A stretch of DNA of 64,000 bases from Bugula neritina (Eukaryota > Animalia > Bryozoa): NCBI GenBank assembly GCA_964035545.1, contig OZ037768.1, positions 21,001,700 to 21,065,699 of the forward strand, given 5' to 3'. Below, in pieces: positions 38,739-64,000 of the stretch (positions are counted from its first letter, which is position 1; each line of letters opens with the position of its first letter). A program made the position numbers and the translations under genes. The notes below the pieces were generated by a model. That model was not told the origin of the DNA. It searched no databases and was given only the letters and a program-made list of their open reading frames with translations.

Positions 38739-41700
38739 CTTTAGACTATTTTACAAGACAATTAGACAGGAAACAGCATGTTTCATGTTATATAGGTAAA
38801 TTTAGACACTAATAGCAGCTACGCAGACTTTCTATCAACTAACACTATATGATACAGTGTATATAACAACTTTATGCGTTATATTAACATTTTCAAGACA
38901 TATAGGCATGCTTTAGCATTAAGTGCTGGTGTTTAATTCTTTAAATAAAGGACTGTAGGCTGTGTTTGTGTTGCTTCTAGTAAGTATAGAGTCTTGATAA
39001 TAAACCATATTAAGAACTGTTTGCATATTAGAATGTATTGCAATTCATTGTTTTTTCTCTTTGTTTACCAGTTAGTTGCTTCTGATATAAAACAGCAATT
39101 CTCTACGACAACCATAGATTATATAGATAATTCATTCAGGTTATTGTAAATTTATTACAAATAATTTAAAAACGTAATTGACATATATAATTTGTTTTAA
39201 TAACATTTGCTGACAATCTTCATGTAATGGAATTTTAGCTTTCTAAATGCAAAATAGTAGACATTGTGAAAAGTAGTTTACAATTCCAATATTTCACATT
39301 CTACAGAATGTATGCATAGATTTTTCAAAGTGAAAGTAGTTTAGCTTTAACTGAGTGATATGGTGTTATACAATCAATTCATATGTATTTTTAACTTTTG
39401 TTAAAGTTTGAGGTGATTTATTTTACAATTTTTAGTTTTACGTGAAGGATATTATTATTGTTTACATAAATTTAGACAAGTTGCATTAACAATGTATACT
39501 GTAAGTATTTCATCAATAAAGACAAAAAACTTTCTGCTGCCTTGTATTACAGCAGTAATATATTTTAGCTTTCTATTTGTGCATTTGAACTAACTTTTAG
39601 TCTAAATGAGTTCATAGATACGCAATATCTCAAACTCTACAATGAGTATAAGCCTAATTGAAACTGTAGACAACAAAAATTAATAAACACACATATAATC
39701 TCATGCATAATAAGTTTCAGAATGTAGAAACAAATATTATAAATGTTTTGAATTCTACTTTTTCATATAGTAACTGTGACAGCCAGACACCTAATGCTCA
39801 AGGAACAGATGCTTGCATGCAAGCTAACTCAAATTATTGCTTATTGTCAACAGTCTATACTCTATAATATTTCCATATACAAGAATATCATTCATAAAGT
39901 ATGAAAGATCTAGAAGTTAGGTTTACACTCAATAATAACAGGTAGTACTTAATGAACTTCTGATATAAAGAAAACAAAAAATAACATAACCTTCACATTT
40001 ATTTTGTGAATATGCTATGAGCAGCTTCAAACAAAGGGACAGCCATGAGAAAAGTGAGTACAACCAACTTTCTTCCGGCTCTTCGTTAACTGAATTGACT
40101 CAAGTCATAATAGAAAGGTAGTTAATTTAGTTAACAATCTATTGGCAAACCCATTTCACATAAAAAAATGTTTCACAAAAAGATGTTGTTGAGAAGCTTT
40201 CGCAAAAAGCTTTTATTTTAATCATTAAACCAACAAGCTGCTGTTACAGTATTCATAAAAGCTATTAACATATATTATTTACAATCAACATTATATTCTA
40301 GTTGTCTTTCTTAGGGAAGTTTGTTTTTGGTGTCTTTTTTAGGAAAGATTGCAATATTTGCCTTATTACTATAGAAGAATTGCCATATTTTCTCTAACAT
40401 GTCTACAGTGTCTATTGCTGATAGCTGCGTATCCTAACTTCTGCAAAATACGCAACGGGGTAAAAAGCAACTGTTATAACAATTTAACACAAAATAATAG
40501 TGGATATATAAGCAACTAATTCATCGTTAGTATATTTGTTATCTGCGTGTAAAACTATTTTCTAAATTATTACTTTAAAGTAAGCTGAAGTAAGTGAAAC
40601 AATCTGCAAAATGTATTTAACAGTAGAAGTAGATTTGAAACTAAATCATGAAGTGTGTTTTGTTACCTCACCTTCTCTGCTTAGTAGACTGTGATGTGAC
40701 TGAGCTATATGGCTGTGCTATTGTTTTACATATAACTAACAAACATTAGTTTACATTCTCCTGTGGTGCATGTGCCTAACATACCATATTGTAATAATCT
40801 CAATGTATTGCTATTGTCAATGTGTATTTTATATAACAATGCTCATGTGAAACAGAAAAGCAGTAAAATGTAAACAGAATTGTTAACTCAACATATAGAC
40901 GCAGCATATATGTAATCAATTTCCCAGCACAAGTTCCTATGTAACAACCGAGATGTTAGTAAAATATTACATAATTATACATTGTCTATAGGACTAGAAA
41001 TTTTGTATTTTGTATGTTAAACGGTTCTTTACAGCTGAATTATAACAATGTATTTTGCTTGTTTGTTTACAATTTTTATTATATATAATTTTCAACTACA
41101 ATCAAAGTACAAGCATATTACTTTCAGATATGTATTCTATACTCTTGTAGTTGTAGAAGTTAGATACACTGGGTCTACAAACAAGGTCCTTGACTTACAG
41201 CCATTCCAAATCTTTTTATATACAGTAGGACATTTTGTTCAGAAAAACAATTTATATGATCCCATTCACTCATTTCATGCTGTCAGTAAACATGGCTAGA
41301 TGCAACTGGTATTCAATAGAATATTTTGATCCCTGAAACAACTATCATGTGACACGTTTAACTGCAGAAATTTATGATAGGAGTTTGAATTGTATTTCAT
41401 GGGTTTTACTTTAACCTATAAGTTAATACTGAAATTATTAACTCTACTATTAATATTATTAGTATTAAATGTATTGCTTTATTCACAGTAAATATACCAT
41501 GTTACCGTGCAATATCTACTCTACAAAAAATTTAAATGCTGTGTATTCCTTGACCTGACATTAATATAATATCCTATAGCACCAAGTGCCATCTCTTAAG
41601 GTTAAAGGTCAGTGCGAAATTATTTTGTAGTGAAGTGTCGAAAGCACCACGTGTTGACTGTGTGAGGCAATGTTGCTAGAAGCAGCACTAAGCTATAGAT

Positions 41701-41829
41701 AACTGAGCACATTATTTGTAAACACGTCGGGGGGGGGGGGGGGGGTTTAAACTGCTTTTGAAACTTGAGTCAATGCACTTAGTGACCATCGACTTGGTGC
41801 TGCTTCAAACAATCTACAAGCTGCACGCT

Positions 41830-44092
41830 GCATTGCGCCCATCGGCATCATTTTCAGTGTTCGCGCTAGGAGGTAAACACTAGTTTAACGATTTCTCCAT
41901 GAGTGGACCTGCCTCAAAAAGTGGTCGGCTAATTCAAATCTCATCCGGTAATTTCTAAGAATATTGCTACTGAACTAATAATAATTTAGATAGATATAGC
42001 TATACTAATACTGAGTATTACTAATACTAATAGTAATAGTAATACTAATAGTAATACTCTTTCTAATCCTCATACTCATAGTCATAGTCATAGTGTCATA
42101 CCGATACTGATAGTGATACTCATTTCTGATTTCATAATCATTAGACTTAGTGATTAGTCATTTCAGTATTTCAATATTTTCTTTTAGTTTTATTAATATT
42201 GTCGATGCAATCACGAATTTGAAGCTTCAAGTAAATGTTATCAGTAAATGACTAAATCACCATGACCATCAGCCTCAGGCATCACCGTCGTTATATTGAT
42301 ATTCAATAGTTATATTCAATAATTTATCGTATTTGTTGGCTTTCCAATGTTACATAATCAATATTATTATGTTCATATTGATATTCACATTGACATTCCG
42401 ATTCTAAGCTCTTGCATGTACTTGTAGTTTTACTGTTTTGATATATTTTCTTCTACTCATCTACTTCTAGTTTGAGCCAATGATGTTCAAGTAAAAAACG
42501 TTATCGTTTTACTTTTAGTTGATAAGGTTATCTTTCTGTGGAGCTCTTTGACAACAGAGGAATTTGGCTAACTGAACCCAGCATTACAGTGTGATTACAC
42601 ATTTCAGACCAATATCTGCATATCTGATAGTTGAAGGTATAAGCAGGCAGATGAAATCATCAGTCTCATCGTCAATGAGATGAAATTACCTGTGGAGCTG
42701 CTCAGGTGCTGCTGAGGTGCTGCTGAGGAGTGTTGGTAAGTGTGGATATGCTGACACCCTGCATAGTGCCCAACATTTAATTATACTTACAACATATTTG
42801 TTTAAATCATTTTTTTTTATATAATCTTTATTGCTGAAAATTACTACATTGCGTCAAATGCTATATTATATTCGACAATTCTATTGCATTGGTAGAGCTG
42901 CTGTACAGCTCTTTTAATTCTCTTCCAGGCAATTCAATCACTTGGTAAAGATCTTTTCATTATTACGCCATTGTTCACTGAATTTCTAAATCTGCCTGGT
43001 ACCACTGAAATATAAGTTATTTCTGCTCCCTAATTAGGTCATGAGTATTATGAAGGCTAAACCACAGAGCTATCAAATCATAATTATAACCATTCAACTG
43101 GGATTTTGTTGTTGCAGTCTGCCTTTGTCATTGTTAGTAAAGTGTAGCAGTAACTTCCCAGTGCTGGCATTGGCATGGTATTTATTATAGCCAGGATTTA
43201 AAGGGCTATTTAAGCAGGCTTACTGTTTAAGCTGTTTTAAGCTATTTCAAGTTGAAAGTTCTCCGGTACTGTATTCAAATTAGGGTGGCAATTGACCACC
43301 ATCCCATTGGCTAATTAGTATTCCAAATGCAAGTAGATTACGTAATTGGCATTTCAGTGCATCTAGCTTTGTGAAAATTTAGGGCATAGCTTAGGTGGTG
43401 GCTAGCTCATACCTTTTAGTAGGCCAACTAGAAGCTGTAGCTCTTGATGAATTTAAATGTATATTTGATGGTCTCAATCTGTTACAGTGACCTGTAAGAA
43501 TTAAAGAATGTGGAGACAAAAAAGAAACAGGTAAACTCGGTACTCTCACTTGTTTTAGATGAATTTGCTTTAATTATCATTTTTATCACCATAATAATTG
43601 GTAATTTACGTGATATTTTCATATTATTAAAAAAAAAAATTATTGGTGATTTAAGATGACTAGTCATAAAGGATACATAACAATTATGAATGTGTCATTT
43701 ACTCGAATCTGATGCTATTAAAATCACTACTGTAACAGTCTTTAGTGTATAGTACTGGCTAGTATCGTACTGATGCTAAGTGTGTAGAAATATAATTGCT
43801 TTAATGTAATCATATAACATCACCAATGACTTTTGTCTGGGCTGCTATAACTTTTTATAATTTTAATCCAGCAGTAGCCATGATATTGTAAATACATTAT
43901 TTACTTACTTTACCTGTGACCTCCTATTTACTAGGCAAAAGATCTAACACCTGCCACTGCTGCTCCCTGTATTTTAAACTATATATTCTATTTATATTTA
44001 GAAGGTGGGTGGCCTGTCTCATCTCTTTATGGCGGACAAAGCTGGTTGACTAAAGCCTAAAGTGAAGGTTGGTGAATTCTAGTGGCAAGCTG
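41830..44092 (+). ncRNA. Candidate spliced non-coding transcript (exon 1 ending 41947; exons 42519-42735 and 44002-44092) pointing into the transposon cluster
   Basis: GC-richer promoter-like segment at 41.6-41.95 kb; donor ccg|gtaatt followed by the hexamer island seen after other first exons; acceptors ttttag and atttag; donors g|gtaagt (twice). The ATG at 41899 gives only 33 aa after splicing, and exon 44002-44092 has stops in all three frames. Start coordinate approximate. Confidence 0.45.
42001..42125. repeat. Hexamer-periodic simple repeat (TAGTAA/TACTAA/CATACT/CATAGT)
   Basis: tatactaatactgagtattactaatactaatagtaatagtaatactaatagtaatact...catactcatagtcatagtcat. Confidence 0.85.
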
Positions 44093-45299
44093 GTAAGTGC
44101 AATAAGAAGTTACTAAAAACAACATATATAATACAATATAATAATTTCTAGCCTCTAGTTCTGTATTATATAACATCAAGTTGAGTGATATTTTGAATAG
44201 AGTTGAGTAGTTATATAAAACTTCTAGAAGAATGGACACAATCCCCATTCCTTAGTAATTTTTCTCCAAAATATTCTAGATTGTTCTGTAAGTGTATAAA
44301 TTGTGTTTCAAGTAAGTTTATATTTGATATTTAAAATAATATAAGACACATTTTTAAATATTAAAAAGTGCTAAACTACAGATGTTTTTGTAAAAGTTGA
44401 TATATCTTTTCATTGAATAGCATACATTAGGCAAGTCCTTTTCAGGGCCAGCCTTATAATACTCTAAAGCCGGCTGGCCAAATGTCATAATTTTTTGAAA
44501 ATATTTAGCTTTTTATGTAAAACTTCATATTCACTAATAATAGCCAGGCTGATTGTTGTGCTGCAAATTTTTTTCACACAACGTGACGCCTGAATAGACA
44601 TTTGGGGACTACTGTTAAATTTTTAAGCATTTTAAACTCGCCTTTGCATTGTAGCTTTTTACCATCTCAAATTTTAGATCCATCCTATTTTTCTCATTTT
44701 TTATTCTGCTTCGCCATGCCTTCAATTGCATGCATAGATTGGCAATATAGCTAGATATTTTTGGTTTGATTGGTTTTTATCAAGAAAATAGCAGCACAAG
44801 TGTTAAAATGTGAAAGCACATAGTTTTCGAGTGCAAATTTTATTTTCTTTCTCATTTTTTAAGTTTGTTTTATTCAACTTATAACATTTATTGAAAGTTT
44901 ATTTCTTCCTAGTTCGAATCTACTTGAAGCAGTGGTGGTGTTGGTGGTACTGCTATTAGTTATTGCAGTTGTTATGCCATGTAAAATTTGTGTGCATTGT
45001 ATTTCATTCAACTTGTGCTCCAGCTAATTTTTTTGAGCTTTCAATTGAGGACAGGGGCAATGATAGTACAGCGCTACCGGTGGTGGCAGCTGTAAATTAC
45101 CTTAGTATGCTTATACTCGAAAGTTACTAGTTTGTTGACCCCTAGGGTGCGTGTGACTTTGGGACTCTCTGTCCATCTGCTAGGAAAACCCCAGAGAATA
45201 AGAAAATATTGAACTATGGATGGCTATCCTTGTCCTTACTCCAAAATGGCCCTTGATCGCTGAAGTATTCACATTTGTGTACTGGTTCTGGATATTTCC

Positions 45300-45535
45300 G
45301 AACTGAAAATCTCTCCATGATGGATTAATTCTAGAAACCGGGGATAAAACAGTTCATTCACATCAAAAATATGCCCAGTAAAACAGTGCATTGTGCGCTG
45401 GTGTCTCAAGATATAATCTCGGTGGTAACTGTACTCCCCGCAGGGACAGAATGTCATGAAGAAATGCTGCGGTATGTGGACCCGCAATGTGCGGGGAGTA
45501 GTGAAGTGCATTTGGCACAAGTAACAGGTGGTATT
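45300..45535 (-). mobile_element. Fragment of an atypical double zinc-finger ORF (C2H2 plus CxC...H...C), probably transposon-borne
   Basis: CYLCQMHFTTPRTLRVHIPQHFFMTFCPCGEYSYHRDYILRHQRTMHC; paralogous to the copies at 53.9, 57.2 and 58.7 kb. Confidence 0.6.
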
Positions 45536-46209
45536 TTTTAAGCATTTTAAATTCACCTTTGCATTTTAGCTTTTTACTATCTCAAATTTTAGATACATCT
45601 TATTTTACTCATTTTTTATACTGCTTCGCCATCCCTTCAATTGCATGCATAGACTCGCAATATAGCTAGATATTTGAGGTTTGATCGGTTTTTATCGAGA
45701 AAATAGCAGCAATTGATTTTTTATTAAACTTTTTTCATCACTCTTCTGATCTACAAGTTGGAATTCTAAGGGAAGGTTTTAGATCTAGTGGTTATTTTTT
45801 AGCACATATTCTATTGCAAGTGAACTGAGCTAATGCACAAGTGTTAACATGTGAAAGGATGTGGTGTTTGTTTCATTTTGTCGAATGCGGAAAAAATACA
45901 TACAGTTGAGGAAAATAAACAAAATGACAAGGCCTATGGGGCAATAGCACTGCAGCTAGTCGAGGCACCGTGTTAGAGTGAAGGTTTTATTTCAGTTTTC
46001 ATTTTCTAAGTTTGTCTTATTCAACTTATAACATTCAATTTTTGCTCCAGCTAGCTTCTTCGTGCTTTCAAAGCCAAACTGTAGAATTTCAGTATTTTAA
46101 CTTTCACTCCATATTTGCTGCAGCTAAAGGCTTAGTTTCTAATTTTGAAAAACAGGTCTGCTTTTTGACGGCTCCTCATTTTGATTATGCTGCAGCCAAA
46201 ATGCTGGGC

Positions 46210-46325
46210 TGAATTCCAGGAAACAGCGGTTGAAGGTGTCCTGCGACATAGAGAACTTTTGCTCTTTTTGAGGATCGACCCTGACAGTCGTAAAAGCCAT
46301 GTGATGCACTGATACAAACATCACC
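46210..46325 (-). mobile_element. Short fragment resembling the N-terminal (CxC-adjacent) region of animal KDZ-type transposases
   Basis: VHHMAFTTV...KFSMSQDTFNRCFLEF resembles the remembered S..AF...D.F.R.FLE[WFY] motif. The fragment is short, so the call is tentative. Confidence 0.4.
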
Positions 46326-46517
46326 CCTAAGTAATTTTTCTCCAAAATATTCTAGATTGTTACGCAAGTGTATAAAATGTGTTTCAAATAAGTTTATATT
46401 TGATATTAATTTAAATTATTTAAGACACATTTTTAAACATTAAAAAGTGCTAAATGACAGTTATTTTTGTAAAAGTTGATATATCTTTTCATTGAATAGC
46501 ATACATTAGACAAGTCC

Positions 46518-46789
46518 TGTAGTGAACTAGGCTTTGAGTTGAGCATTAACTCTTCACTGATGTCCTTTATTTTGTTTTATTCAACATACATTAGTTGATC
46601 TCATTGACTTCTATTTACATCCTATCGACACCGTCAAGATTATTTTGCTCTCTTAAAATTACACCAGTTCACTAACACCAACAATTGCCAAGTGCCAGAG
46701 TTAGCACTGGCTGTGCTGTAGAAAGCTTTTCTTAGTGCGTTGTTCATATAGCTAAAATAGCTTAGCAAAGTAGCGCTAATTTCACTACA
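46518..46789 (-). mobile_element. Solo LTR, 272 bp, with 5-bp target-site duplication
   Basis: Termini TGTAGTGAA...TTCACTACA; TSD AGTCC at 46513-46517 and 46790-46794. The empty site caagtccttttcaggg is present in the paralogous module near 44432. Orientation inferred from AATAAA motifs on the minus strand (~46565-46580). Confidence 0.9.
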
Positions 46790-46942
46790 AGTCCTTTTCA
46801 GGGCCAGCCTTATAGTACTTTAAAACGGGCTGGCCCAACGACATAATTTTGTTAAAGTATTTAGCTTTTTATGTGAACCTTCATCACTAATAATAGCCAG
46901 GCTGATTTTTGTGCAGCACATTTTTTCACACAATGTGACACC

Positions 46943-48031
46943 TGTAGCGTCGCCACTAACTATAGATGAGTTGTACTGGTGTTGGTTTTCGTAACTTTAT
47001 TTTTACGTATTCCAACTGCCGTAAGAAACTGTAAAAGTAGGTTATTAATATATGCAACTATAACAGGTTTTTAAAATAAAACAAACCGAAATTATTTATG
47101 TAATTGTAAAATATTCAAACATATATACAAATCTTGAATTAATCACCTCTTGCCTTCTTTTAGTGGCTAGCTAGGTTAAGTTTGTTTCTATGAAACGGTA
47201 TTACAGGTCTACTAAAAAATATCAAACTATAATAAAAATGACATTAAGTGATAACTGCAATTAGACAAATGTTAAGACAATTAGTAAGAATGAATGTATA
47301 GCCCATAGACAGGGATTGAAACTTATATTCAATGTTCACTTAAATTAGTAGCTGCATTAAACTACTGTAAGTGTAAAAATAAGGTTTTAACTGCCAATTA
47401 GAATACTAGCCAGTGATAAACTAATCAATCACTGGAGAGCTTGCCTTAAGAATTTGTAATTTTGTGAGAAATCTATTATGAAGTAAACACATAGCCATAA
47501 ATTCTATCATGCACTGACCACACTGGCATTCTAAAAATTGTCAAACTTATAAACATGTTAAATAAACCAAATAGTTATTCTTATAGTTGAAATAGATAAA
47601 AATACTTAAGGAAAGCTTCAAATTATTACAAATACTGAAGAACAAAACTAACCTGTGCCTCTTTAAGTTAATTCCAATTTAAATTCATTTGTATTTTATT
47701 AATTATATCATTTAAAACTGATGTTATTGATGTAATAAGCTTGCATCGCTAGCGCGCTACTATTCCACTAACTGTAGGGTCAACGTCTGCACTCAAACAT
47801 CCGGGCTGCCTAAGCGTAACGCCACAGCCAATGAGCGAGAGCGTGCTGTTATCTAATTAATGAATTTACAACTAGTAGTCGTTGCGTAGGCGATAATCAC
47901 GTGATGCGATAACCTATTTGAGTGGAACGTTGTGCTAAACTCAACGCTGAATGCTAGATTAACTATTATGTATTCATTACACTACATTACTTTTACTGCT
48001 TGAATTAATTATGTTCATTGCTAACTTTACA
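46943..48031 (-). mobile_element. 3' LTR (~1.09 kb) of the BEL/Pao element
   Basis: On minus it begins TGTAAAG immediately after the polypurine tract AAAGGGGGAG (48041-48032) and ends GCTACA at 46943, where similarity to the host module (44250-44592) stops. Confidence 0.8.
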
Positions 48032-48069
48032 CTCCCCCTTTGATTCGCTTTAGATTGCCGAATCAAAAC

Positions 48070-49930
48070 TTAATACTGCGCCCTCTGAATTACTACTATG
48101 GATTGAATCGGTCTCTCTAGGTAGCTAAAGTCAGATCTCCGTTTCCCATTTCTATCAAGACTGCTATCAGCTAAGAGTAGTTTTACCTTGCGGACCTTGC
48201 CATCGCTGCTTGGTATAGCTTCCACTACCCGAGCCAGCGGCCAACTGTTGCGTACCGACTGGTCATCCTTCACCACAACTATATCGTCTTTTTTTTCCAT
48301 TAGGCTGTGAGCCTTCCCATTTCTGTCTAACCTGTAGAGATTGCAGGTATTCAAATCGCCATCGTGACCAAAATGTGTTGGCCAGACCTTGTACCTGGCG
48401 CCATCGTTTTCTGGAATAAACATCGTGGTCATCAAATTCTCCTGGTGGAGGTTGCGCAACCTTTGTTTTCATTGTCAGCAACTGGTTTGGTGTCAATGGT
48501 GTGCAGTCATCATTTACAGCCAGAGGCCTGGAATTTACTATTGCCATAACCTCAAACAGGAGGGTCCGAAGAGTGCTAGTGTTAAATCTCATCTTGTGCT
48601 GTGCAAGCATAGAATTCAAGATGTTGCGTACTGAACGGATCTGGCGCTCCCAGACGCCACCCATGTGGCTTGAGTTAGGTGGATTAAACACAAAATCAAA
48701 GTTGTTCCGCAGTGCAAAGTTGTCCAGCTTTCTAGCGCTTTCTGTCAAAGCTTTGTGAAATTCGTTTGCTGCCCCTATAAAGTTTGTTCCTCTGTCTGAT
48801 CTTAGCTGCCTTATTGGTCCTCGCATAGCTATGAAGCATCTTGATGAGTTTATAAATGCGTCAGTACTCATATCATCTAATAGTTCGAGGTGCACGGCTC
48901 TTGATGCCATACACGTAAATATAAGGCCATATCGTTTTTGCTCTTTTCGGCCTTCTTTCACATAGAATGGGCCAAAGCAGTCACAGCCAACATACGTAAA
49001 TGGTGGACCAGGTGTTGTTCGTTCTACAGGGAGGCTAGCCATCTTTTGCGTCTCTGTAGGTCGTCTCTGTCGTCTACATTTTACACAGTGGTGAATGCAT
49101 GTGTTTACCAAATGAGTGCAGCCTATTATCCAATAGCCTGATGCCCTAATTTCTGCTATTGTAGCATTTTTGCCCTGATGGGCTGTTCTTTCATGACAGT
49201 GTCTTACTAGTAATTGAGTGATGTGTGATTGGCGAGGCAGAATTATTGGATTCGTCTCTTTATATGGAAGCTCAGTAGATTGCAGTCGTCCACCAACTCT
49301 CACCAATCCAAACTTATCCATAATCGGATCCAGTTTCCTTAATGAACTCTTTTTGTCTAGTGTGCCGTTTTTGACTTTGTTGTAGTCAGGTAAACCTTGT
49401 TGTTGGGCCCATTTGAAAAATAAAAACTTTGTCTCTTCGTTATCTTGTACGGTTGCCTGGGGGGCTTTTATGAAACTTTTGTTTTGGCAGGCTTTGCGGA
49501 GTGTTGTTACTGCTCGTATAGCTGTATTCAGATCTGAAAACTTCAATAGCCTGTCAACCCAGCTACTGGTGGAGTTAGAAGTTTGCGTTCGATGACAAGT
49601 TTTTATTTTTGGATCACTGTCTCTTGTAAGAAAACTCTCTTGACACGCTGAAAAATCAGGCAGGTTTTCACTCCAAAGGAAGTCTGGTCCTTTTAGCCAT
49701 TTAGAATCTGATAACTTAGAGGCTGAGGTGCCCCTTGATGCCAAGCCTGCTGGATTTTCCATAGTATTGATGTAGTGCCACTGTTTAGGATTTTTAGTCT
49801 CTCTAATCTTCTGTACTCTGTTGGCAACATATACGTGGAATCGTTTTGTTTCGTTGTTGACATAGCCTAGAACGATTTTCGAATCTGTCCAATAATGTTG
49901 TTCCACAGTTTCTAATCTGAGTTCTTTTGT
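48070..49930 (-). mobile_element. BEL/Pao LTR retrotransposon pol, 3' part (end of RNase H, integrase, C-terminal domain); 5'-truncated, one frameshift in an A-run near 48295
   Basis: WTDSKIVL, FHVYVANRV, HHCC finger (HCHERTAH...CVKC), catalytic CDCFGP / SDRGTNF / GGVWER, then FWSRWRFEYLQSLQVRQKW and NSWPLARV...VRKV...LERPIQSIV. Confidence 0.95.
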
Positions 49931-53834: not shown

Positions 53835-54090
53835 AAGAATGTTGGGTAGAAGGCCTCGTCTACATCGTATGGATTCCCTTGGAAGCAATTCATTGTCCTT
53901 TGGTGACAGAGTATATAGTCCCTGTGGTAGCTGAACTCCCCACAAGGACAGAAGGTGGTGACAAAGTGCTGTGGGAGATGCACCTGCAGCCTGCGGTGAG
54001 TGGTGAAGTGTTGTTGGCAGAGCCGACAAATAGTACTGTCTTCATCAGCGCGGTATTGGCGAATCTCCCTTTCCGTTGCTGGCGTCGTAC
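53835..54090 (-). mobile_element. Atypical double zinc-finger ORF fragment, fused downstream to a gag zinc-knuckle fragment (LVCWRCGSNGH)
   Basis: CRLCQQHFTTHRRLQVHLPQHFVTTFCPCGEFSYHRDYILCHQRTMNC; duplicated at 57100-57360. Confidence 0.65.
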
Positions 54091-54094
54091 AGCT

Positions 54095-54430
54095 GACCAA
54101 TTGCTCTCGCATAACTGGAGGAAGTTCTTCGAGTTCTTTTGCAATTCCGCATCATCCCTAATGATTGCCATCTCAACCTTTAATGTCACTGGGCGCTTAA
54201 CATAGTGGGAGATCTGTATAAACATTTGAGCACTTTTGTTTCCAAGTTTTGAGACAGCCATTTCAACTGCTTCACATTTTTGTTGTTACTTCCATTAGAG
54301 TACAGCTCTTTCAATAGGCGTTCAAGGAAATACAGTTTTGTTGTATTTGTATTAAAATCAGCTGCTCTTCGATCCTTGTTGGACCCTGTTCTCAAGACTT
54401 GACCTTTTCAATAAAAGACGATATTCCTGA
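54095..54430 (-). mobile_element. Fragment of a putative tyrosine-recombinase-family gene (N-terminal helical region, no catalytic residues); duplicated at 57360-57700
   Basis: AVSKLGNKSAQMFIQISHYVKRPVTLKVEMAIIRDDAELQKNSKNFLQLCESNWSA resembles the remembered +GH.+K+......A+..D......F..L....W...+S..AL motif of animal SET-domain-associated recombinase-like proteins (PANTHER PTHR33480-like). Confidence 0.5.
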
Positions 54431-55319
54431 AAGTACAGAAAATAACTGACAAATTAGGAATATCACTCGCATATGACACATCATTTCATTAATAAACTCA
54501 TTATAGAACTTGTAACTACATTACAGCAATTTTTTTTACTGGCTTAACAAACTATCAGACACATCTTGAATTTTTTGGTTGTTTGGCTCCACTGAAATTA
54601 CTTATTTTTGCTTGGTATTTGCAAACTAATTTAAGCCCAATCATAGCCATTTTATACGATACGTTTGTAACAGCTCAAGTCACCCTTTAACTGTTGGGTA
54701 CCACTTATTCCTTATTTTGCAGTAATCCTATAGCTTGCTTTATCTCATACGGCAAACTTGCCCTTTTATACTTATATCCTCCTAATTAGTATGGGCACTG
54801 CCTCAACAATAGAGATACTTCTTTCTCTATTTCCATCTCTTTATTTTTTTTTTCAGCAGATATGCCAAAAAATAATTAGAAAGTAAAACTTGTGAACGCA
54901 GTGAAATTTTAGATGAGCAATTATTTTAAACTCAACAACTTCAAATATGCAATGTTATTTTAACTGCTGATGCAGCCCCGAAGATTTGAAAAGTTTTGAC
55001 AGATTTTAATTTAATATATTATCTTCCAAAATACAGACTTTATTGCATGTTTAAATTAGAAAATAAAATAGCCAAACATTATTTGAAACAAATTTATATT
55101 AGCAACTGTGAGCTTCAAAACCCCTTCTACATGAAACAAAATTATGCCAACTGTATATCTTTTCCATAAAAGTAAATTTAGCTTATAACTTTACCTCTCT
55201 AACCTTTGAAATTATTTCTGAAAATCAATCAAAAGTGAAACCAATTGCTATGTAAATAAAAGAGCTCAGTTGGAACTTACTGAGTATGCACTTATAAACT
55301 GCAGTTTTTTTAAAGACAG

Positions 55320-55640
55320 GAGTAAAACCGTTTCAATGTGATATATGTGAGAAGAAGTTTATTCAGAAATCAAACCTAAATTATCACATGAGAATTCATA
55401 CCGGGAAAAAACCATTTCAGTGTGGCATTTGTGACAGCAAGTTTTCAAGGAAAGATCAGTTAGATGCTCACATGAGAACTCATACAGGAGAAAAGCCATT
55501 TCAATGGGATATTTGTAACCTTAAATTTGCTCAGAAATATTGTCTAAATTATCACATGAAAAGTCATTCAGGGGAAAAACCATTTCAGTGTGATATTTGT
55601 GACAGTAAATTTGCTCAGAAATCTCATTTAAGTTATCGCA
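55320..55640 (+). pseudogene. Fragment of a tandem C2H2 zinc-finger array (~4 fingers, one Cys to Trp change)
   Basis: HTGEKPFQC linkers; no start context; fused to the antisense 3' end of the DUF4806-like exon. Confidence 0.85.
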
Positions 55641-56061
55641 TGATTTCATCCCGTGTCTCCTGTATCTATACGTGTCTCCCTAGGTTCTTGGAAAGCTTTC
55701 TTTTGTAGCATTACTGAGTTCATTCACTGTAAAGGTTAAATCATGTTATTTACTGCTTGATTTTTTACGTTGTCCCACAGCAAGCTAAATGAAACAACAA
55801 TGCTTGTTTGGGTGATAATGGAGAAAAGGTGACACAGATACATTTTACATAATAAACTAAATGCACCGCAATAATAAAACATATACACGTAAAACATTGA
55901 TTCTTACCTTTATCATATTCAACTTTGGAAATAGCTTATTCCAAGGATTATTATTCTTTTTTTTCATATCTCCTTTTGTAACTTTACCTCTCTAACCTTA
56001 GAAATTATTTCCAAAAAACAATCAAAGTGAAACCAATTGCTATGTAAATAAAAGAGTTTAG

Positions 56062-56250
56062 TTAGAACTTACTGAGTATGCACTTATAAACTGCAGTTTT
56101 TTTTAAAGACAGCTTTTTATGTCGCTTATGGGCTTTGCCCTTCATGCCTAATAGGCTCCACAGTCCATTAGTGCCAATTCTTCTCATTGCCCGTTTAACC
56201 ATATCTGAGCAGCTTTTTCTCCTCAGTTGGAAGAGAAAAGTTGTCCACAA
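56062..56250 (-). mobile_element. DUF4806/BEN-like accessory gene exon (copy 2)
   Basis: Duplicate of 52792-52980. Confidence 0.65.
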
Positions 56251-58309
56251 AATTGATTTTATCTAGCATGAGTCTGCATGAATACATTTACTGTTATTAC
56301 AGTTTGAAAAATATTTTTTCTAATAATGAGAAACACTCCATAAGAGAAACACATTGTAGCTTGAAAACCTAAAGTTCACTAGAAATATCAGGCACACCAG
56401 GATGTTATACATTGCAGGTTATACACCGATAGTCTTTAAATTAGCTATGCAATATATTATATAGTAACACTATGTACCAGAGCAGATCATTTCTCTTTTG
56501 ACGATTGAAGAAGCCCTTCAAAATATTTGAACTCTTGCATTGTTTTTAAAGGCTCCTCCAGGTGCTCGGTGATAGTTATATTACCCTTGCAACTATGGCG
56601 ATCACTGATCATAGCCATTATTTTTTGCTGCTCAACCAGTAACTCTTTGAGTTGTTTCTTCATGTCTGTAAAATTCCATACTATATATGACCTAAAACTA
56701 AGTTTTAGTTTATAGCTGTCCTATATTAGTATTTAGATTAACTAAAAATGAACACTCTTGTAATTTATCTACGACCAAAGCAAATCCAGCAAGTTACCAA
56801 GCTCAAGACTACTGATTCCAAAAGATTCCTTTTGTCCTGATAACTACACAAGAACATGTAATTGCTACTCTTTTGCTGAAAACTTGTATAAATACAGAAA
56901 TTTGATTATAGTACATTAGGCACCTTCTACGTCTTTTTTGAGTTCTCCAGTAAAATCGGCTGGTCCGGAGCTGTCATCTGCAACTATTTCTTTAGACCAA
57001 CTTTTGAAATTCTTTCAATTTAGTAGGTAGCCAAAAGTATTGCTAGGAGAGGTGTCCATTACTTCCACATCTCCAACACACAAGGGTGCGTCTGCCGAAG
57101 TTGAAGAATGTTGGGTAGAAGGCCTCGTCTACATCGTATGGATTCCCTTGGAAGCAATTCATTGTCCTTTGGTGACAGAGTATATAGTCCCTGTGGTAGC
57201 TGAACTCCCCACAAGGACAGAAGGTGGTGACAAAGTGCTGTGGGAGATGCACCTGCAGCCTGCGGTGAGTGGTGAAGTGTTGTTGGCAGAGCCGACAAAT
57301 AGTACTGTCTTCATCAGCGCGGTATTGGCGAATCTCCCTTTCCGTTGCTGGCGTCGTACAGCTGACCAATTGCTCTCGCATAACTTGAGGAAGTTCTTCG
57401 AGTTCTTTTGCAATTCCGCATCATCCCTAATGATTGCCATCTCAACCTTTAGTGTCACTGGGCGTTTAACATAGTGGGAGATCTGTATAAACATTTGTGC
57501 ACTTTTGTTTCCAAGTTTTGAGACAGCCATTTCAACTGCTTCACATTTTTGTTGTTACTTCCATTAGAGTACAGCTCTTTTAATAGGCGTTCAAGGAAAT
57601 ACAGTTTTGTTGTATTTGTCTTAAAATCAGCTGCTCTTCGATCCTTGTTGGACCCTGTTCTCAAGACTTGACCTTTTCAATAAAAGACAATATTCCTGAA
57701 AGTACAGAAAATAACTGACAAATTAGGAATATCACTCGCATATGACACATCATTTCATTAATAAACTCATAATAGAAATTGTAACTACATTACAGCAATT
57801 TTTTTTACTGGCTTAAGAAACTATCAGACACATCTTGAATTTTTTGGTTGTTTGGCTCCACTAAAATTACTTTTTTTTTTGGTTTAGTATTTGCAAACTA
57901 ATTTAAGCCCAATCATAGCCATTTTTATACGAGTCGTTTGTAGCGGCTTAAGTCACCCTTTAACTGTTGGGTACCACTTATTCCTTATTTTGCAGTAATT
58001 ATATAGCTTGCTTTATCTCATACGGCAAACTTGCTCTTTTATACTTATATCCTCCTAGTTAGTATGGTCACTGCCTCAACAATAGAGGTACTTCTTTCTC
58101 TATTTCCATCTCTTTATTTTTTTTACTTTTCAGCAGAATTTCCAAAAAATAATTAGAAAGAAAAACTTGTGAACGCAGTGAAATTTTAGATGAGCAATTA
58201 TTTTAAACTCAACAACTTCAAATATGCAACGTTATTTTAACTGCTGATGCAGCCCTGAAGATTTGAAAAGTTTTGACAGATTTTACTTTAATATTATACT
58301 CGTATTATC

Positions 58310-58555
58310 TACTCAGAAATCAAACCTAAATTATCACATGAAAATTCATACCGGGGAAAAACCATTTCAGTGTGGCATTTGTGACAGCAAGTTTTCAAGG
58401 AAAGATCAGTTAGATGCTCACATGAGAACTCATACAGGAGAAAAGCCATTTCAATGTGATATTTGTAACCTTAAATTTGCTCAGAAATATTGTCTAAATT
58501 ATCACATGAGAAGTCATTCAGGGGAAAAACCATTTCAGTGTGATATTTGTGACAG
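58310..58555 (+). pseudogene. C2H2 zinc-finger array fragment (second copy)
   Basis: HTGEKPFQCGICDSKFSRKDQLDAHMRTHTGEKPFQCDICNLKFAQK... Confidence 0.85.
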
Positions 58556-58634
58556 AGCAGATCATTTCTCTTTTGACGGTTGGAGAAGCCCTTCAAAATA
58601 TTTGAACTCTTGCATTGTTTTTAAAGGCTCCTCC

Positions 58635-59652
58635 AGCACATAGTCTCTCTGGTAAGAGAATTCGCCACACGGGCAAAACACGTTGATGTAGTGCTGTGGG
58701 GCGTGTACACGCAACCGCCGTGCAGAGGAGAACTTCCTCTGGCACTGGTGGCAGATGCGGTTGCCCGGCTCACCGCAAGCTTCACCAATCCTAAGATTGG
58801 TGGGTTCAGTCACCCAATACTGGCGGGCGACCAGGGCCTGAGGCAGGGCCAGTATTGGGGAGTCATCTTCTCCGGCTGCGAGGTGGTCGCCGTGTAGGAT
58901 GCCCTGCTCCTCCCCGGCCGTGAGCTGAAGCTCGACCGGTTTGGGGTCAGGGCCACTAACCATGGCGGAACACACCTCTCTGGAGGAGGTGGCGTCCTGC
59001 TGGCTGTGAGAAGCCGAAGCAGGAGCCGGTGGGAGAGGGGAGTCGGACTGACTGGCCTCCTCAATGTCCATACGCTCCTCTAGAACAGATAGTAGAGGCT
59101 GTGATAAGCCGGTCTCACTATCGCCGAAATTCGGCATAGTTGTGTATGGAGCCAAATTAAAAACTGGGGGCCGAGGGGTATCACAGAAATTGACTGAGCC
59201 CACGTCATGATCCAATAAAGTATCAATGGCAGAGTCATCTCCGAAATCCACCTCGGCCTCCGGTTCTAAGAAATCAGACCCAAGTAAGTCTAATAAAGAC
59301 CAGTCTACACTAGTTTGACTGGATCCTCCGTAACTGGAGGATCTAATCTAAATGAAATACCTGATTGCGTGTCTGGTAAAGTAATTCCCATAGCTGCTGA
59401 TAACGTATGGAGAACAGTATTTAAATCAAACTTGGGGGTATCAGGATCAGAATTCAACTTAAGCTGTAACTGACGTGCTAGCTGCGTGAAATCAGAACTA
59501 GAAATGGCCGAACCTCGTGCTTCAGAAGTATTACCTGCCAAAGCCCGAGTCGCGTGGCCCGTGGGAATTTCCCCCCGGATTTCGAAAAGACAACTCGCGT
59601 GATCGAGTGTCTTCCGAAATTCTCGGCAACAAAGGACACACACACACAACAT
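58635..59652 (-). mobile_element. GC-rich ~1-kb piece of a large ORF (acidic/Pro-rich region followed by the atypical zinc-finger pair), truncated in the second finger
   Basis: ORFs 59305-59652 and 58562-59251; CHQCQRKFSSARRLRVHAPQHYINVFCPCGEFSYQRDYVL; sharp composition change relative to the flanks. Confidence 0.65.
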
Positions 59653-60439
59653 AAATTTACCACAATATTATGGTTACAAAAATATTATGAGTAAAAAGTT
59701 CTTTTTTAGATTACAATCACAGAGTTGAGTTAGGCAGAACAAACTAGAAAACTGTGTGCAATTTCTCATCTTTGGAATCGCTAATAACATTTAATACATG
59801 TTTGATAATAGATTATGTGTATTTTGCCAGTCACACACACACATTGGTAAAAACCAGCTTTACAACTTTCAAAATTATTTTATTCTAAAAACAACTACAA
59901 AAATGCAGCAATAAGTATTTTTGAAAAAAGGATATTTGGTTACTCAAAAGCAGGTTTCATTAGCAACGACAGTACATCATGTGACTAAAAACAACCTGGA
60001 AGAAACTCCAACATATACAGTGTGCAAGCAGCACAATCATAGGTATTTTTAAGCTACACATAAAATTATTATTGAAGAGAGCTAGTTGAAATATTTCCTC
60101 ACTCAGAAAGTGGCTTGAAAAATATAGCCAAAAACTATCAAAAAAGGTTTCAAGAAAAAAGCTTTAGTCCTCGTCAGATGAGTCAGAATAAGTCGGCTGC
60201 AAGTCATCATCATCTATAATTTCTTCTTGATCACACTGGAAACCAAACTGAAGTATTTTTTAATCACCCCATGTTAGCAACTATACAAGTTTTGAATTAG
60301 ATTATGGTACCAAAAATATTATAGTTATACTTCTACTGAAGATTAAAAAACACACATAACAGTTTCAAATAGTGCAACATGTTATTAGTTTATCTTTTAA
60401 AGGATCCCTGGAATGCGGTACTTATGCACTATTAAATAT

Positions 60440-60504
60440 TTATATGTATATACATACATATATATATGTGTATATATTTATATATATGTGTGTATATATT
60501 TATA

Positions 60505-60571
<67 letters not shown>

Positions 60572-60582
60572 GTATGTATATC
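60440..60582. repeat. Imperfect (TA)n microsatellite
   Basis: TA run interrupted by TG/CA. Confidence 0.95.
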
Positions 60583-60710
60583 AATTCAGCACATATATAC
60601 ATAACATTTGTTGTAAAACAGTGTTGAAATATTTTTATATATAATATTAACTTTCATTTACATTTACAGAGATCCTTCAACATATACAAATATAAAAAAA
60701 CTTTACAATC

Positions 60711-61660
60711 TTAGCTAAACATTTGCCAACATTTAGATACAACCTCTTGATCAGTACCAGAGAAGTTGGCATAACAAGACTTGAGAAAGGCTTGTTTAAA
60801 TTGGGTGGAGATGGTGTCATCATTATGGTTACCATCACTTAAGGATGCTGCCATGCATGCTACAAGAAATTTATGGTGGCTACATTGACAGAAAACTGAC
60901 ATAGTGATGACATAAAAAGACAGTTTTGCCACAAGAATAGATAGAATAGTAAATTGAGTTACACATGAAATTACAGAGCAAAAAATTAAAAAAACTGATT
61001 TTGGAAAATGGAAATTTACAACTACTATACCTACATATTCAAGCAATTTTACGCGCTCTGCACCTAATATATTCAATTTTTCCGCTGTTCTATTGTAGAG
61101 ATGGCACGCATTGAACAGCTTCAGTAAATTGGGGGATACAGAGAGCTTGATTTCCGAGCCTGTCCATGGAAAAACCATGAAGGTGGCTAAATCAAAGTCT
61201 GTACGAGACAGGTCCGGGTGATTTCGCACATACTCACCGGCAGCCTTTTGAAGCTTCAAATATGTCGCACGTCGTTTACTCCGCAACCTGTCACGCCCCT
61301 TTGATGAGTCTAAATTATGAAACATATGAATGGTAGTTGCCACTAAACATTTAAACTTTTGAGCAACCGCAAAAAAAAGCAAATTTGACTAAAAATAGGT
61401 ATAGTAATGTGACGGACAACATTTCTTGCTACAGAAAATAGAATGGGTCCATCTCAGATGAAAACTTCCCAGTTGGACGCTATTTTTCATTTTGGTAAAA
61501 AATCAAATAAGATATATACACATGTTGCCTGCATAAAAAATTATCACAACACCGAACTAAAAATTAGAAAAGTTACAAGTTTGACAACCTGCTAACTTGA
61601 GTATGTTTGCATCAAACCGCTGTATAGTGCAAGCTAAATCTTCCAATTTTCTTTGATCTG
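60711..61660 (-). mobile_element. Intron-containing C-terminal part of a KDZ (Kyakuja-Dileera-Zisupton)-type transposase-like gene
   Basis: DSSKGRDRLRSKRRATYLKL...FPW...LYNRTAEKLNILGAERVKLLEY resembles the remembered D.SK.R.R+R.K / [FW]PW / R..EE..I+..E pattern of animal KDZ-like proteins (PTHR33104-like). Small upstream exon ~61657-61590. Confidence 0.55.
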
Positions 61661-62009
61661 CAGTCAAATCTAATAATAAAAATATACAATTTAACGTTTA
61701 TTCTGCTATGTATTGAACTAGCCTTATCATTACACCACATAGACATCTTATGACTTGCCACATTTTACATACTGGGTTAACTCTTATTCTGATGTCTATT
61801 TGCCTAAACTCATTATATACAGTTTTTTGCCATACTAATACATAAGTCAATTAATATTCTGTAATTTTTCATCTACATTTATTTTAATGTCAGTTACCTG
61901 TTAGCTCCAAGACGTTACAGTCATACATTCTACAATCTTAGTTATGTGTATTTAATCTTACTTGTCTAACAATATGGCAGGAGCACAACACAGGTGGTCT
62001 GGAGCTGTC

Positions 62010-62520
62010 ATCTTCAACTATTTCTTGCACTTTTTTGCACTTTAGGCAAGTTTATTATCAGAAGACACTACATCTATAAACTTCCCAAGTTTACCGGCAT
62101 CAGTATCTAGAGTGACTTCATATCTGTTGTTGAGCCTTTGTAATCTCTGTCGTTTAGTCAGTGCGTCACTAATTTTAGCTGACCAATTGCTTTTGTATAA
62201 CTTGAGGAAATTCTTCGAGTTCTTTTGCGATTCCTCATCATCCCTAATGATTGTCATCTCAACTTTTAGTGTGAGATCTGTATAAACATTTGAGCACTTT
62301 TGCTTTCAAGTTTTGAGGCGGCCATTTCAACTGCTTCATATTTTTTTGTTACTTTCATTAGAGTACAGCTCTTTTGATAAGCGTCCAAGGAAACACAGTT
62401 TCTTTCTGTTTATATTTTAAAATGAGCAGCCTTTCGATCCTTGTTTGACCCTGTTCTTAAGACTTGACTTTTGGCAAACTCTTATTAGGCTGTCATTTTT
62501 AATAAAAGGCAATATTCCTG
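62010..62520 (-). mobile_element. Longer, more diverged copy of the tyrosine-recombinase-family-like fragment
   Basis: IIRDDEESQKNSKNFLKLYKSNWSAKISDALTKRQRLQRLNNRYEVTLDTDAGKLGKFI. Confidence 0.55.
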
Positions 62521-63064
62521 AAAGTAAAAAAAATAACCAACAGCTTGGAATTGTTTGTACACAGGTATGCAGAGCAAGCATGGTTAGGCATTGCTGTTTG
62601 ATCTCACATGTTCATCTCCCAATAAACTTGCCCTTAGTAGCTGTCTTAACAAAACTGTCTGACGATTGCTCTGCAAGGTTATGTATGGCTCTTTGATATT
62701 TGATCATATATTTATGGTAATCATCTTCAAAAGAGTATGGTAAGTGATAAGGAAAAGAATAAAAACCAGAAATATTTATTTTTATTTAGGTTTCCGACTC
62801 TCATCTTGTATATAATAACTTATCTTTAGTGGGTATACTGCTACTACATAAAATAAAAGCATCTATCAACTCGAAACAGTAAATTTATCAATGCAGTGAA
62901 ATAACTTTATAGTGAATATCCAGAAATCTTTTATAACATGCATACTACATCATTTAAGTATGCAGACATCATAAACCTTTCTTGTAGAAGGATCGGGGGC
63001 AACATGTTCTTCGACCAGCTTTTGAAAATCTTCCAATTTAGCAAGTGGCCAAAAGCATTGCTAA

Positions 63065-63760
63065 AAGAGAGGTGTCCACCACTTCCACAACCCCAACACA
63101 CAAGGGTGTGTCTGCCAACGGCAGCTGTTGACGACCTAGCAGGTCGATCAACTGCCGACTGTTGTCAGAGGCGCCTGATTTCCAAGCTCGTGGTTAAGTC
63201 GACCGGCTTGTCGGCTGCCGCCGTGGCTACGTGTACAGACGCCGTTGTCGGCTTCTACTTGCTGTACAGCCGTCCCAGGCTGACACTACCATCTGTTTCG
63301 AAATAGGCATTTCCAAGCTGGAGAGCCTTCTCCATCGTCCCAACTTCATTAGCAACTTGCGACAGCCGTTCCACCACGGTCGTGTGTTCTCGCAGAGGAA
63401 GTCCTAGGATGTCTCCTAAGCCCTTGGAGTTAGACACGCGCATCTCGAGCGGTGAGCCCAAACCTGGCTCTCAACGCATCGAAGATGTCGGTAACATCCT
63501 GGCCAATACCATAAAGTTTGGCCGCTCCAGCCAGGCACAACCGCAGCTGGATTAGAGTAACTCCGGCAGGCCAACGACAGATGGCTCCCACATAACATGC
63601 TGAATTCAGCGATAAATTGCTCCACATCTTCTCTTGAGAAGGTAGTAGCCCGCAAATAGTACCTGTCCATATGCAGCGCTGGGCCGCCTATGACATCCTC
63701 TACAGCTGCCCGTTGGATCGGTTCCAGACGTGGAATGTCTTCTTCGTTGTCACTGGTCAT
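63065..63760 (-). mobile_element. Gypsy-type gag, frameshifted and internally deleted, ending in a zinc knuckle
   Basis: ATG 63760; FSREDVEQFIAEF, LIQLRLCLAGAAK...IFDALRARFGLT, LREHTTVVERL; knuckle LVCWGCGSGGHL near 63110-63070. Confidence 0.8.
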
Positions 63761-63801
63761 ACTCTTTTACTCTTTGGCTAAGAGCATTAACTTCTAATTA
63801 T

Positions 63802-64000
63802 ATCCCACTGCTGCCACCACTGTTGTGAAATTGTGCTTCACTTAGTTTGTGGGAATTAGAATTAAAGTAATGCCACTGGCTTAGAGTATGAAAGGGTTTA
63901 TTTATACAAATAATATAAAATTTTCTAACTACACAGAAATACAAGCATTACATAATTATACAATAGCGGAAACACAACCTAGCTAATCCACTGCTGCCAC
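63802..64000 (-). mobile_element. tRNA-Leu primer-binding site (63819-63802) and 3' end of the 5' LTR (63821 onward)
   Basis: Minus strand reads ...CACAACA G TGGTGGCAGCAGTGGGAT, complementary at 17 of 18 nt to the typical metazoan tRNA-Leu 3' end ATCCCACCGCTGCCACCA. AATAAA on minus near 63900. Confidence 0.85.

Follow-up and report, generated by a model that had tools for sequence, protein, structure and literature searches.

A strand-polarised island of transposon fragments beside a promoter-like module in the bryozoan Bugula neritina: a candidate small piRNA source

The DNA described here is a window of 64,000 nucleotides from the bryozoan Bugula neritina (contig OZ037768.1, written C4 below; C4:21,001,700-21,065,699 of an AT-rich assembly of 216 Mb and 321 contigs, GC about 0.30-0.43). 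The next 60 kb downstream were also read and are cited in extended coordinates (64,001-124,000; 124 kb in total). Between 44.25 and 65 kb lies an island of about 21 kb in which fragments of long terminal repeat (LTR) retrotransposons and of DNA transposons are coded on the minus strand, and upstream of it is a promoter-like module that points along the plus strand. We tentatively read this locus as a small unistrand source of PIWI-interacting RNAs (piRNAs), a reading that holds a plurality, not a majority, of the odds. It is favoured because the polarity is total across transposon classes, because young insertions match it and because the promoter module contains no open reading frame (ORF).

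In the proposed mechanism, RNA polymerase II would start on the plus strand near 41.8 kb and, with no coding potential downstream, would read into the island. The island would act as a trap in which LTR-retrotransposon and DNA-transposon fragments have accumulated antisense to the transcript, growing both by new insertions and by tandem duplication of a 3.3-kb mosaic unit. The long transcript would be processed to antisense piRNAs, including piRNAs against the BEL/Pao, Gypsy and KDZ families, which have intact or young copies. We infer transcription of the locus, its direction and extent, its splicing and its processing into small RNAs. On this reading the bryozoan has many small unistrand piRNA sources, and the locus is one of them, neither a homologue of flamenco of Drosophila nor a 'master' source; the label of master locus, given to it in an earlier reading made from the letters of the window (hereafter the sequence-only reading), is unsupported.

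The structural prerequisites of such a source hold, in that the island contains fragments of several classes of transposable element (TE) in antisense to a plausible start on the plus strand. Of the families represented, three have intact or young copies elsewhere. An intact BEL copy with an ORF of 1,967 amino acids (aa) and an intact-looking Gypsy element 57 kb away indicate that the target families are recent. The genome has at least six Piwi-domain loci (PF02171), of the PIWI or AGO clade. Four Piwi-domain genes stand in tandem within 43 kb (C2:12,874,000-12,917,200), and further Piwi-domain loci are found at C2:7.08 Mb, at C4:9.39 Mb and on contig C216. Bryozoa have PIWI1 and PIWI2 (PMC11114477), and TE-enriched piRNA clusters have been documented in another lophotrochozoan phylum, the molluscs (PMC6128900).

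Composition and polarity of the island

Transposon debris can be recognised in at least 77% of the DNA between 44.25 kb and the window end, in agreement with the sequence-only reading, which had described almost everything past 44 kb as such debris. About 15.2 of the 19.75 kb can be assigned to families: 14.1 kb are coded on the minus strand, 0.7 kb on the plus strand, and 0.3 kb belong to a miniature inverted-repeat transposable element (MITE) without orientation. The claim that LTR elements and DNA transposons are both present is likewise borne out, by BEL/Pao, by Gypsy and by four DNA-transposon types, and the DNA-transposon pieces are as biased as the LTR-derived ones. All TE coding fragments of 44-64 kb whose strand can be set are on the minus strand; the plus strand holds the two C2H2 zinc-finger arrays (55298-55705 and 58248-58640) and nothing else of this kind, as had been claimed.

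When the 124 kb were screened by tblastn with 35 unaltered natural TE ORFs from the same genome, matches in 44-64 kb were exclusively on the minus strand, and there were none in 1-44 kb or in 65-86 kb. The minus polarity persists in DNA that was not used for choosing the locus (86-101 kb). Minus-strand matches are found there to a retroelement (86.7-89.1 kb), a mariner (91.2-91.75 kb; Transposase_1, E 4e-21) and fragments of long interspersed nuclear elements (LINEs; 96.6-97.3 and 100.1-100.8 kb), and two small inverted pieces of the retroelement and mariner families are also present (tblastn). We take the retroelement to be Penelope-like from motifs only, Pfam and PHROGs giving no match; the LINE label is presumed in the same way, from motifs only and with no Pfam match for the ORFs. 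A full-length Gypsy element at 116-124 kb lies on the plus strand, so a TE outside obvious genes is free to take that orientation.

The promoter-like module

The promoter-type signature upstream of the island is established. A CpG islet at 41.6-42.3 kb has an observed/expected ratio (o/e) of 0.8-1.1, against 0.1-0.3 in its flanks; its part at 41600-41947 (CpG o/e 0.8-0.9, 11-12 CpG per 300 bp) is single-copy in the genome. An uninterrupted run of about 17 G occurs within the islet, at 41727-41745. Tracts of (ANT)n at the density set for the search number three in the 124 kb (2.2-2.6, 14.2-14.6 and 41.9-42.2 kb), and each adjoins a putative plus-strand gene start, the tract at 2.2-2.6 kb standing 0.3 kb past a CpG islet; the motif itself is widespread in the genome. 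Islet and tract at 41.6-42.2 kb are ordered and oriented as at the other two putative starts. Since the islet and the rare tract occur together here, a plus-strand start near 41.8 kb is plausible.

Apart from the periodic tract, the DNA of 41-44.26 kb is single-copy, and neither an ORF nor an Rfam RNA was found in it. The promoter-like region described by the sequence-only reading is borne out by the islet and the tract, and the lack of a useful ORF is borne out as well; its three putative non-coding exons are placed by consensus sites only. The GGTAAG donors on the plus strand, 2 against 0.33 expected, are weak evidence. The polyadenylation motif AATAAA occurs 0 times on the plus strand of 42-44.25 kb and 33 times on that of the island (observed/expected 1.9).

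Identity of the fragments

The identities and strands of the fragments are established as follows. Pfam matched none of the following: 45272-45565, 53777-54151, 58565-59667, 60714-61388 and 63419-63766, the ORFs of the retroelement (86.7-89.1 kb), those of the LINEs and the upstream exons. Such pieces were named by homology to fuller genomic copies, with the exception of the recombinase label, which came from weak language-model leads, and of the Penelope-like and LINE labels, which came from motifs; PHROGs gave no match for those Pfam-negative pieces that were searched.

The BEL/Pao fragment shows Integrase_H2C2 and DUF5641 (Pfam) in a 569-aa open stretch (48266-49972, minus) and its continuation (48073-48468, minus), which together represent the integrase end of BEL/Pao. 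It is 97% identical to a full element at C7:14952499-14961285, in which two 1,089-bp LTRs enclose the uninterrupted ORF, and BEL pol and LTR are thus confirmed on the minus strand. Because of this intact copy and of the many solo LTRs across the genome (91-98% identity), the BEL/Pao family looks recently active. The fragment was inserted in pre-existing sequence: alignment of the junction reveals an empty-site paralogue at 44540-44660.

The ORFs at 58565-59667 (minus), formerly taken for a Gypsy gag with its primer-binding site, are not gag. They share 90% aa identity with the third ORF of the full-length Gypsy element 57 kb downstream, and a gag-like piece is found elsewhere (63397-63766). 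At the DNA level, this young fragment is 96% identical to a short derivative, LTR-ORF3-LTR in structure, of which the genome has at least 25 copies. The full-length element (plus strand, extended 115.9-123.9 kb, C4:21117570-21125600) carries gag, pol and a third ORF of 544 aa with a zinc-finger end; its GC content is 57-60%, against 33% for the genome, and its CpG o/e is 0.7-0.9. A probable LTR, 86% identical to a C3 copy, lies just past the window end (extended 64068-64966). The double zinc-finger ORFs are, judged by their 39-58% aa identity to the C-terminal part of Gypsy ORF3, older diverged relatives of that part. Their minus strand was read correctly by the sequence-only reading.

The YqaJ fragment by itself reaches only E 0.053, and its minus-strand assignment is upheld through the parent family (YqaJ E=1.9e-18). 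For the KDZ-like pieces, the minus strand holds for the 3' part (59665-61992), while the KDZ identity is weak: the ORFs are 85-94% identical in aa to one genomic copy in which a KDZ motif lies upstream on the same strand, and this motif, seen in the flank of that copy, has E=2.7e-4, below the Pfam cut-off. A (TA)n microsatellite occupies 60433-60603 inside the KDZ-like piece.

The minus strand of the recombinase-like and DUF4806-like pieces also stands, the homology underneath being weak in both. The recombinase-like pieces match a chain of same-strand ORFs on C1, of which the last ORF gives a tyrosine-recombinase lead; this label is only a language-model lead, with a score of 0.88 and no Pfam or PHROG match. 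The DUF4806 match has E 0.018, and one copy of the relative of this piece on chromosome 8 adjoins a co-oriented DDE_Tnp_4 transposase ORF (E 1.4e-30). On that chromosome (C8:272,000-4,450,000), a composite repeat of at least 2.7 kb, with DUF4806-like ORFs and a zinc-knuckle ORF, is present in at least 20 copies that are 93-97% identical and spread across 4.2 Mb. Its copies share one orientation except two, its only relatives elsewhere are the 80% copies in the island, and it looks like a large segmental array, not the product of free transposition.

Searches for other functions gave negative results. In 38-64 kb the Rfam search gave nothing beyond noise from TA repeats, with no small nucleolar RNA (snoRNA), microRNA or any further known RNA, and for this reason the reading of the locus as a snoRNA host gene is without support. 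ARAGORN found no transfer RNA. A contig search with a unit-specific ORF as transcript query gave no match, in a collection that may leave out records of this genome.

Duplication history and the number of independent events

The duplication history of the island is established as well. About 8 kb (50.5-58.6 kb) are made up of three tandem copies of a single 3.3-kb mosaic unit. Two 3.27-kb units are 97% identical (52401-55017 = 55671-58294; repeat search and self-BLAST), a third copy (50538-51797) is 91% identical, and older, partial copies occupy 44.2-46.9 and 62.1-63.1 kb. The window has 27 repeat pairs of 100 bp or more, every one of them direct and none inverted. In the ancestral unit, zinc-finger, recombinase-like and DUF4806-like pieces were in place before the arrival of BEL, of the young Gypsy derivative, of the KDZ-like piece and of the MITE. 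The C2H2 array and the YqaJ piece occupy the same break in the DUF4806-like piece, in different unit copies, and the array at 55298-55705 interrupts the DUF4806-like element, with a duplicated flank of 137 bp on either side. These direct duplications of host sequence flank both inserts (55183-55319/55976-56112 for the C2H2 array, 51639-51775/52706-52842 for YqaJ) and are far longer than a target-site duplication.

Because the unit is tandemly triplicated, the dozen-plus pieces reduce, when each family is counted once, to about 7-8 independent minus events against 0-1 plus. The statement of the sequence-only reading that 8 of 9 fragment types, not all of them fully independent, share one strand is right as to polarity, which is real. 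Two-sided binomial p values are 0.008 for 8/8, 0.016 for 7/7 and 0.039 for 8 of 9, all of them post hoc: about 3,370 windows of this genome were scanned, and it was the bias that singled out the locus. Because of this choice, the bias is not compelling alone. The younger insertions share the old orientation: BEL, the Gypsy derivative, YqaJ and the KDZ-like piece are 97, 96, 93 and 92% identical to genomic copies, respectively, compared with 73-80% for the old debris.

Alternative explanations

Several observations weigh against a piRNA source. The island measures about 21 kb, compared with hundreds of kb for flam-like clusters, and only about 5.4 of the 15.2 assigned kb are LTR-derived. The putative exon-like segments are drawn from consensus splice sites alone. 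AATAAA is not depleted on the plus strand of the island, which gives no sign of selection for read-through, although the count carries no information, since the motif is about as dense in real introns upstream. By chance statistics the strand bias is suggestive and not decisive; tandem duplication inflates the visual polarity, the three fragments of the ancestral unit may have come as one block, and the orientation of the DUF4806-like and recombinase-like pieces depends on weak homology. The island may instead be neutral intergenic debris, not transcribed as a unit and with no function, the polarity of which would come from a few co-oriented insertions, direct tandem duplication and selection of the locus. 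The 3.3-kb unit in three full and two partial copies, with 27/27 direct repeat pairs, fits such debris, as do the only 7-8 or so independent events (p 0.008-0.04), the thousands of windows screened and the undepleted AATAAA. If the zinc-finger, recombinase-like and DUF4806-like pieces came as one block, 4-5 events are left (p 0.06-0.12), and the DUF4806-like relatives on chromosome 8 are co-oriented over 4 Mb by duplication and not by selection on insertions. However, three further families keep the polarity in the 37 kb that follow, DNA that had no part in the choice of the locus, separate younger insertions all share the old orientation, and the promoter-type signature points the matching way. 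Neutral debris is an explanation that we place on the unlikely side, while taking it seriously.

An ordinary plus-strand gene could also begin at the 41.8-kb promoter, with a TE-filled long intron or 5' region and exons beyond the island. Sense insertions, with polyadenylation or splice signals that truncate the mRNA, would be purged and antisense insertions left, and any piRNAs would be incidental. An antisense bias of intronic TEs is established in animals, where it is usually partial; the bias here is total. In putative exon 1 an ATG opens a frame of 16 codons, and the (ANT)n signature otherwise marks putative protein-coding gene starts, but the next 2.3 kb hold no coding exon and the frame meets a stop immediately in predicted exons 2 and 3. 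The C2H2 coding region at 79-81 kb offers candidate downstream exons, the verified host coding sequence of the 124 kb is all on the plus strand (ROCO with its leucine-rich repeat (LRR) exons at 92-106 kb; C2H2 at 80.2-80.9 kb), and the LINE fragments in the ROCO LRR-exon array are likewise antisense to their gene. Conversely, an intron of 21-35 kb would be unusual beside the compact upstream genes, the module of 41-44 kb has no counterpart at two tandem ROCO paralogues, and the genes downstream could have their own start at the CpG islet of 67.3-67.6 kb. A long intron seems to us unlikely, slightly more so than neutral debris. Hardly any credence can be given to one large composite minus-strand element whose co-oriented genes were mistaken for separate fragments. 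That all pieces share one strand would suit it, yet the families have their own distributions: BEL and its solo LTRs on many chromosomes, the Gypsy derivative in at least 25 copies, YqaJ on six chromosomes, the DUF4806-like unit on chromosome 8 only and the recombinase-like element on chromosome 1. Examined genomic copies lack the neighbours found in the island, and BEL sits in older sequence with an empty-site paralogue. As the families are separately distributed and diverged, this candidate was rejected, and the small unistrand piRNA source is the reading that we retain, on the tentative footing given above.

Features of the island and its upstream module

The coordinates of the individual features are collected in Table 1.

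Table 1. Features of the promoter-like module and the transposon island, in window coordinates
Feature	Position	Strand	Evidence or remark
CpG-rich promoter-like islet and putative first exon	41600-41947	+	16 codons from an ATG (41900); donor GGTAAT (41947)
Degenerate (ANT)n / 6-bp-periodic tract 3' of putative exon 1	41960-42160		density search
Exon-like segment 2	42607-42735	+	acceptor cag 42606, donor GGTAAGT 42735; stop six codons after exon 1 junction
Exon-like segment 3	44001-44092	+	acceptor tag 44000, donor GGTAAGT 44092
Older partial copy of local unit, empty-site paralogue of BEL site	44250-45016		matches 46326-46944 and 50029-50516; self-BLAST 87-93%
Old Gypsy-ORF3-like double zinc-finger fragment	45323-45565	-	tblastn to Gypsy ORF3: 45% aa, E 2e-19
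YqaJ-bearing element, 3' end fragment	46087-46213	-	94% to the same family as the YqaJ fragment at 51989-52334; tblastn
MITE-like 270-bp repeat in local unit	46517-46790		>40 genomic copies, both strands, 74-98% identical
BEL/Pao fragment, 5'-truncated	46943-50024	-	3' LTR and 3' 2 kb of pol (integrase, DUF5641)
BEL/Pao 3' LTR, 1089 bp	46943-48031	-	match to full C7 element
Tyrosine-recombinase-like (Crypton-type lead) fragments	50538-51039, 54082-54589, 57351-57864, 62069-62532	-	73-76% DNA, 42-80% aa to C1 element
DUF4806-like fragment, copy A	51042-53723, split 51775/52706 by 930-bp insert	-	~80% to chromosome-8 composite repeat
YqaJ exonuclease-gene fragment	51989-52334	-	93% to genomic family whose ORF scores YqaJ E 1.9e-18
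Old Gypsy-ORF3-like zinc-finger fragment inside unit	53828-54124	-	39% aa to Gypsy ORF3, E 6e-18
DUF4806-like fragment, copies B and C	B 54592-55319 and 55976-56992; C 57861-58298	-	~80% to chromosome-8 repeat
C2H2 zinc-finger arrays	55298-55705, 58248-58640	+	zf-H2C2_2 E 2e-32 and 2e-30
Second unit copy of zinc-finger fragment, and tail	57097-57393; tail 63010-63116	-	
Non-autonomous Gypsy derivative, young fragment	58631-59664	-	end of pol, ORF3, 44 bp of LTR
KDZ-like DNA transposon, 3' 2.3 kb	59665-61992	-	90-92% identical to five genomic copies
Gypsy gag-like fragment, GC-rich	63397-63766	-	46% aa identity to full-length Gypsy gag, E 9e-11

Downstream neighbourhood and base composition

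Candidate exon 1 lies upstream of the island, and plus-strand C2H2 and ROCO coding sequence lies downstream of it. The C2H2 zinc-finger coding region (plus) is at 80.2-80.9 kb, and a second CpG islet is found at 67.3-67.6 kb. The ROCO gene, also on the plus strand, has LRR exons at 92-106 kb and a 716-aa LRR-Roc-COR exon at 104.3-106.4 kb; the LINE pieces sit between its plus-strand LRR cassette exons. Paralogues of this exon number at least 62, at 44-88% identity, and most of them keep an intact frame of about 700 aa; they form clusters on C1 (33.8-35.1 Mb) and C6, and ROCO is a large lineage-specific expansion. Three ROCO copies stand in tandem on C4. The 41.8-kb module was tried as the promoter of the ROCO gene and rejected because no paralogue of it is present at two tandem ROCO copies.

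A tandem duplication of about 6.9 kb, with no recognisable domains, occupies extended 67.66-70.59 and 74.53-77.42 kb. Since a collinear paralogue (77-88%) of this duplication lies between the second and third ROCO copies (C4:21,186,644-21,198,785), a block of about 60 kb that includes ROCO was duplicated. Among the ROCO LRR cassette exons, an inverted duplication with arms of about 1.4 kb (92.7-94.1 against 95.0-96.4 kb) is either a foldback-type element or a local inversion-duplication.

CpG is depleted across the 124 kb (mean o/e 0.43), in genic and intergenic DNA alike, apart from GC-rich retroelements of young age and the short islets that mark putative gene starts. In 2-kb bins, o/e is 0.2-0.7 everywhere and does not separate genic from island DNA. 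Depletion throughout the 124 kb suggests that germline methylation is widespread in this genome.

Implications

If the locus is a piRNA source, it would belong to the first piRNA clusters described in Bryozoa, and flamenco-type logic (a single promoter and antisense capture) would work in Lophotrochozoa on a scale of 20 kb; its promoters would be of the housekeeping type, and its targets would include both DNA transposons and retroelements. The unistrand 'trap' model would then extend beyond arthropods and retroviral elements; the locus would add a phylum to the known range of piRNA clusters without being a system of a new kind. That the genome has a whole set of small promoter-driven antisense traps, which take in every transposon class and feed a unistrand piRNA pathway, is a broader proposal that we hold to be doubtful. 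Should small RNAs confirm the locus, a rule that uses sequence only (promoter signature, then polarised TE debris) would be available for piRNA sources in a phylum without cluster annotation. Should they not, the locus would serve as a caution that an ordinary graveyard of transposons can come to resemble flamenco through local tandem duplication and post hoc selection, and that orientation bias needs to be judged on independent insertions against a genome-wide null.

Comparison with known systems

In Drosophila, a flamenco-type cluster yields abundant piRNAs of 23-32 nt, 1U-biased and from one strand; its long Pol II precursor comes from a single upstream promoter and is spliced near its 5' end, and its synteny is conserved between related species. 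Like flamenco, the island has a candidate single promoter upstream of truncated, nested and overwhelmingly antisense TE fragments, includes fragments of families with intact copies elsewhere, and would start beside ordinary genes. Its TE fragments are mostly antisense to the inferred plus-strand transcription (about 7-8 independent minus events), and it is enriched in TEs with young insertions (at least 77% TE; BEL 97%, Gypsy derivative 96%, MITE 94%, KDZ-like 92%). However, flamenco-like loci in Drosophila span 227-1085 kb, and their bias is specific to env-carrying Gypsy elements (PMC10643416), and flam-like unistrand piRNA clusters have been treated with FlaHMM (PMC11400887). The island of about 21 kb (44.25-65 kb) falls well short of the hundreds of kb that can be detected in 100-kb windows, its bias covers BEL, Gypsy and four DNA-transposon types and is not Gypsy-specific, and much of its length is a tandemly triplicated unit. 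The anatomy put forward by the sequence-only reading is largely real, but as a flamenco-type locus the island fails on size and on Gypsy-specific bias (PMC10643416). Coming from a different phylum, and known here from sequence alone, the island would be at most an analogue of flamenco and not a homologue.

The island also resembles antisense TEs in introns, as its fragments are antisense to every verified nearby host coding region, and the LINE pieces in ROCO introns follow the same pattern. Unlike those, its bias is total and not the usual moderate excess.

Mollusc piRNA clusters are typically tens of kb in size, and the island is similar. The clusters of Lymnaea stagnalis and Crassostrea gigas were defined with proTRAC by mapped small RNAs (PMC6128900), whereas the evidence for the island is its DNA. 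Like the mollusc clusters, the island is lophotrochozoan and enriched in TEs, both Gypsy and DNA transposons, some of them inserted recently. The genome might have hundreds of such loci, among which the island would be counted, and broad expression might follow from its housekeeping-type promoter signature.

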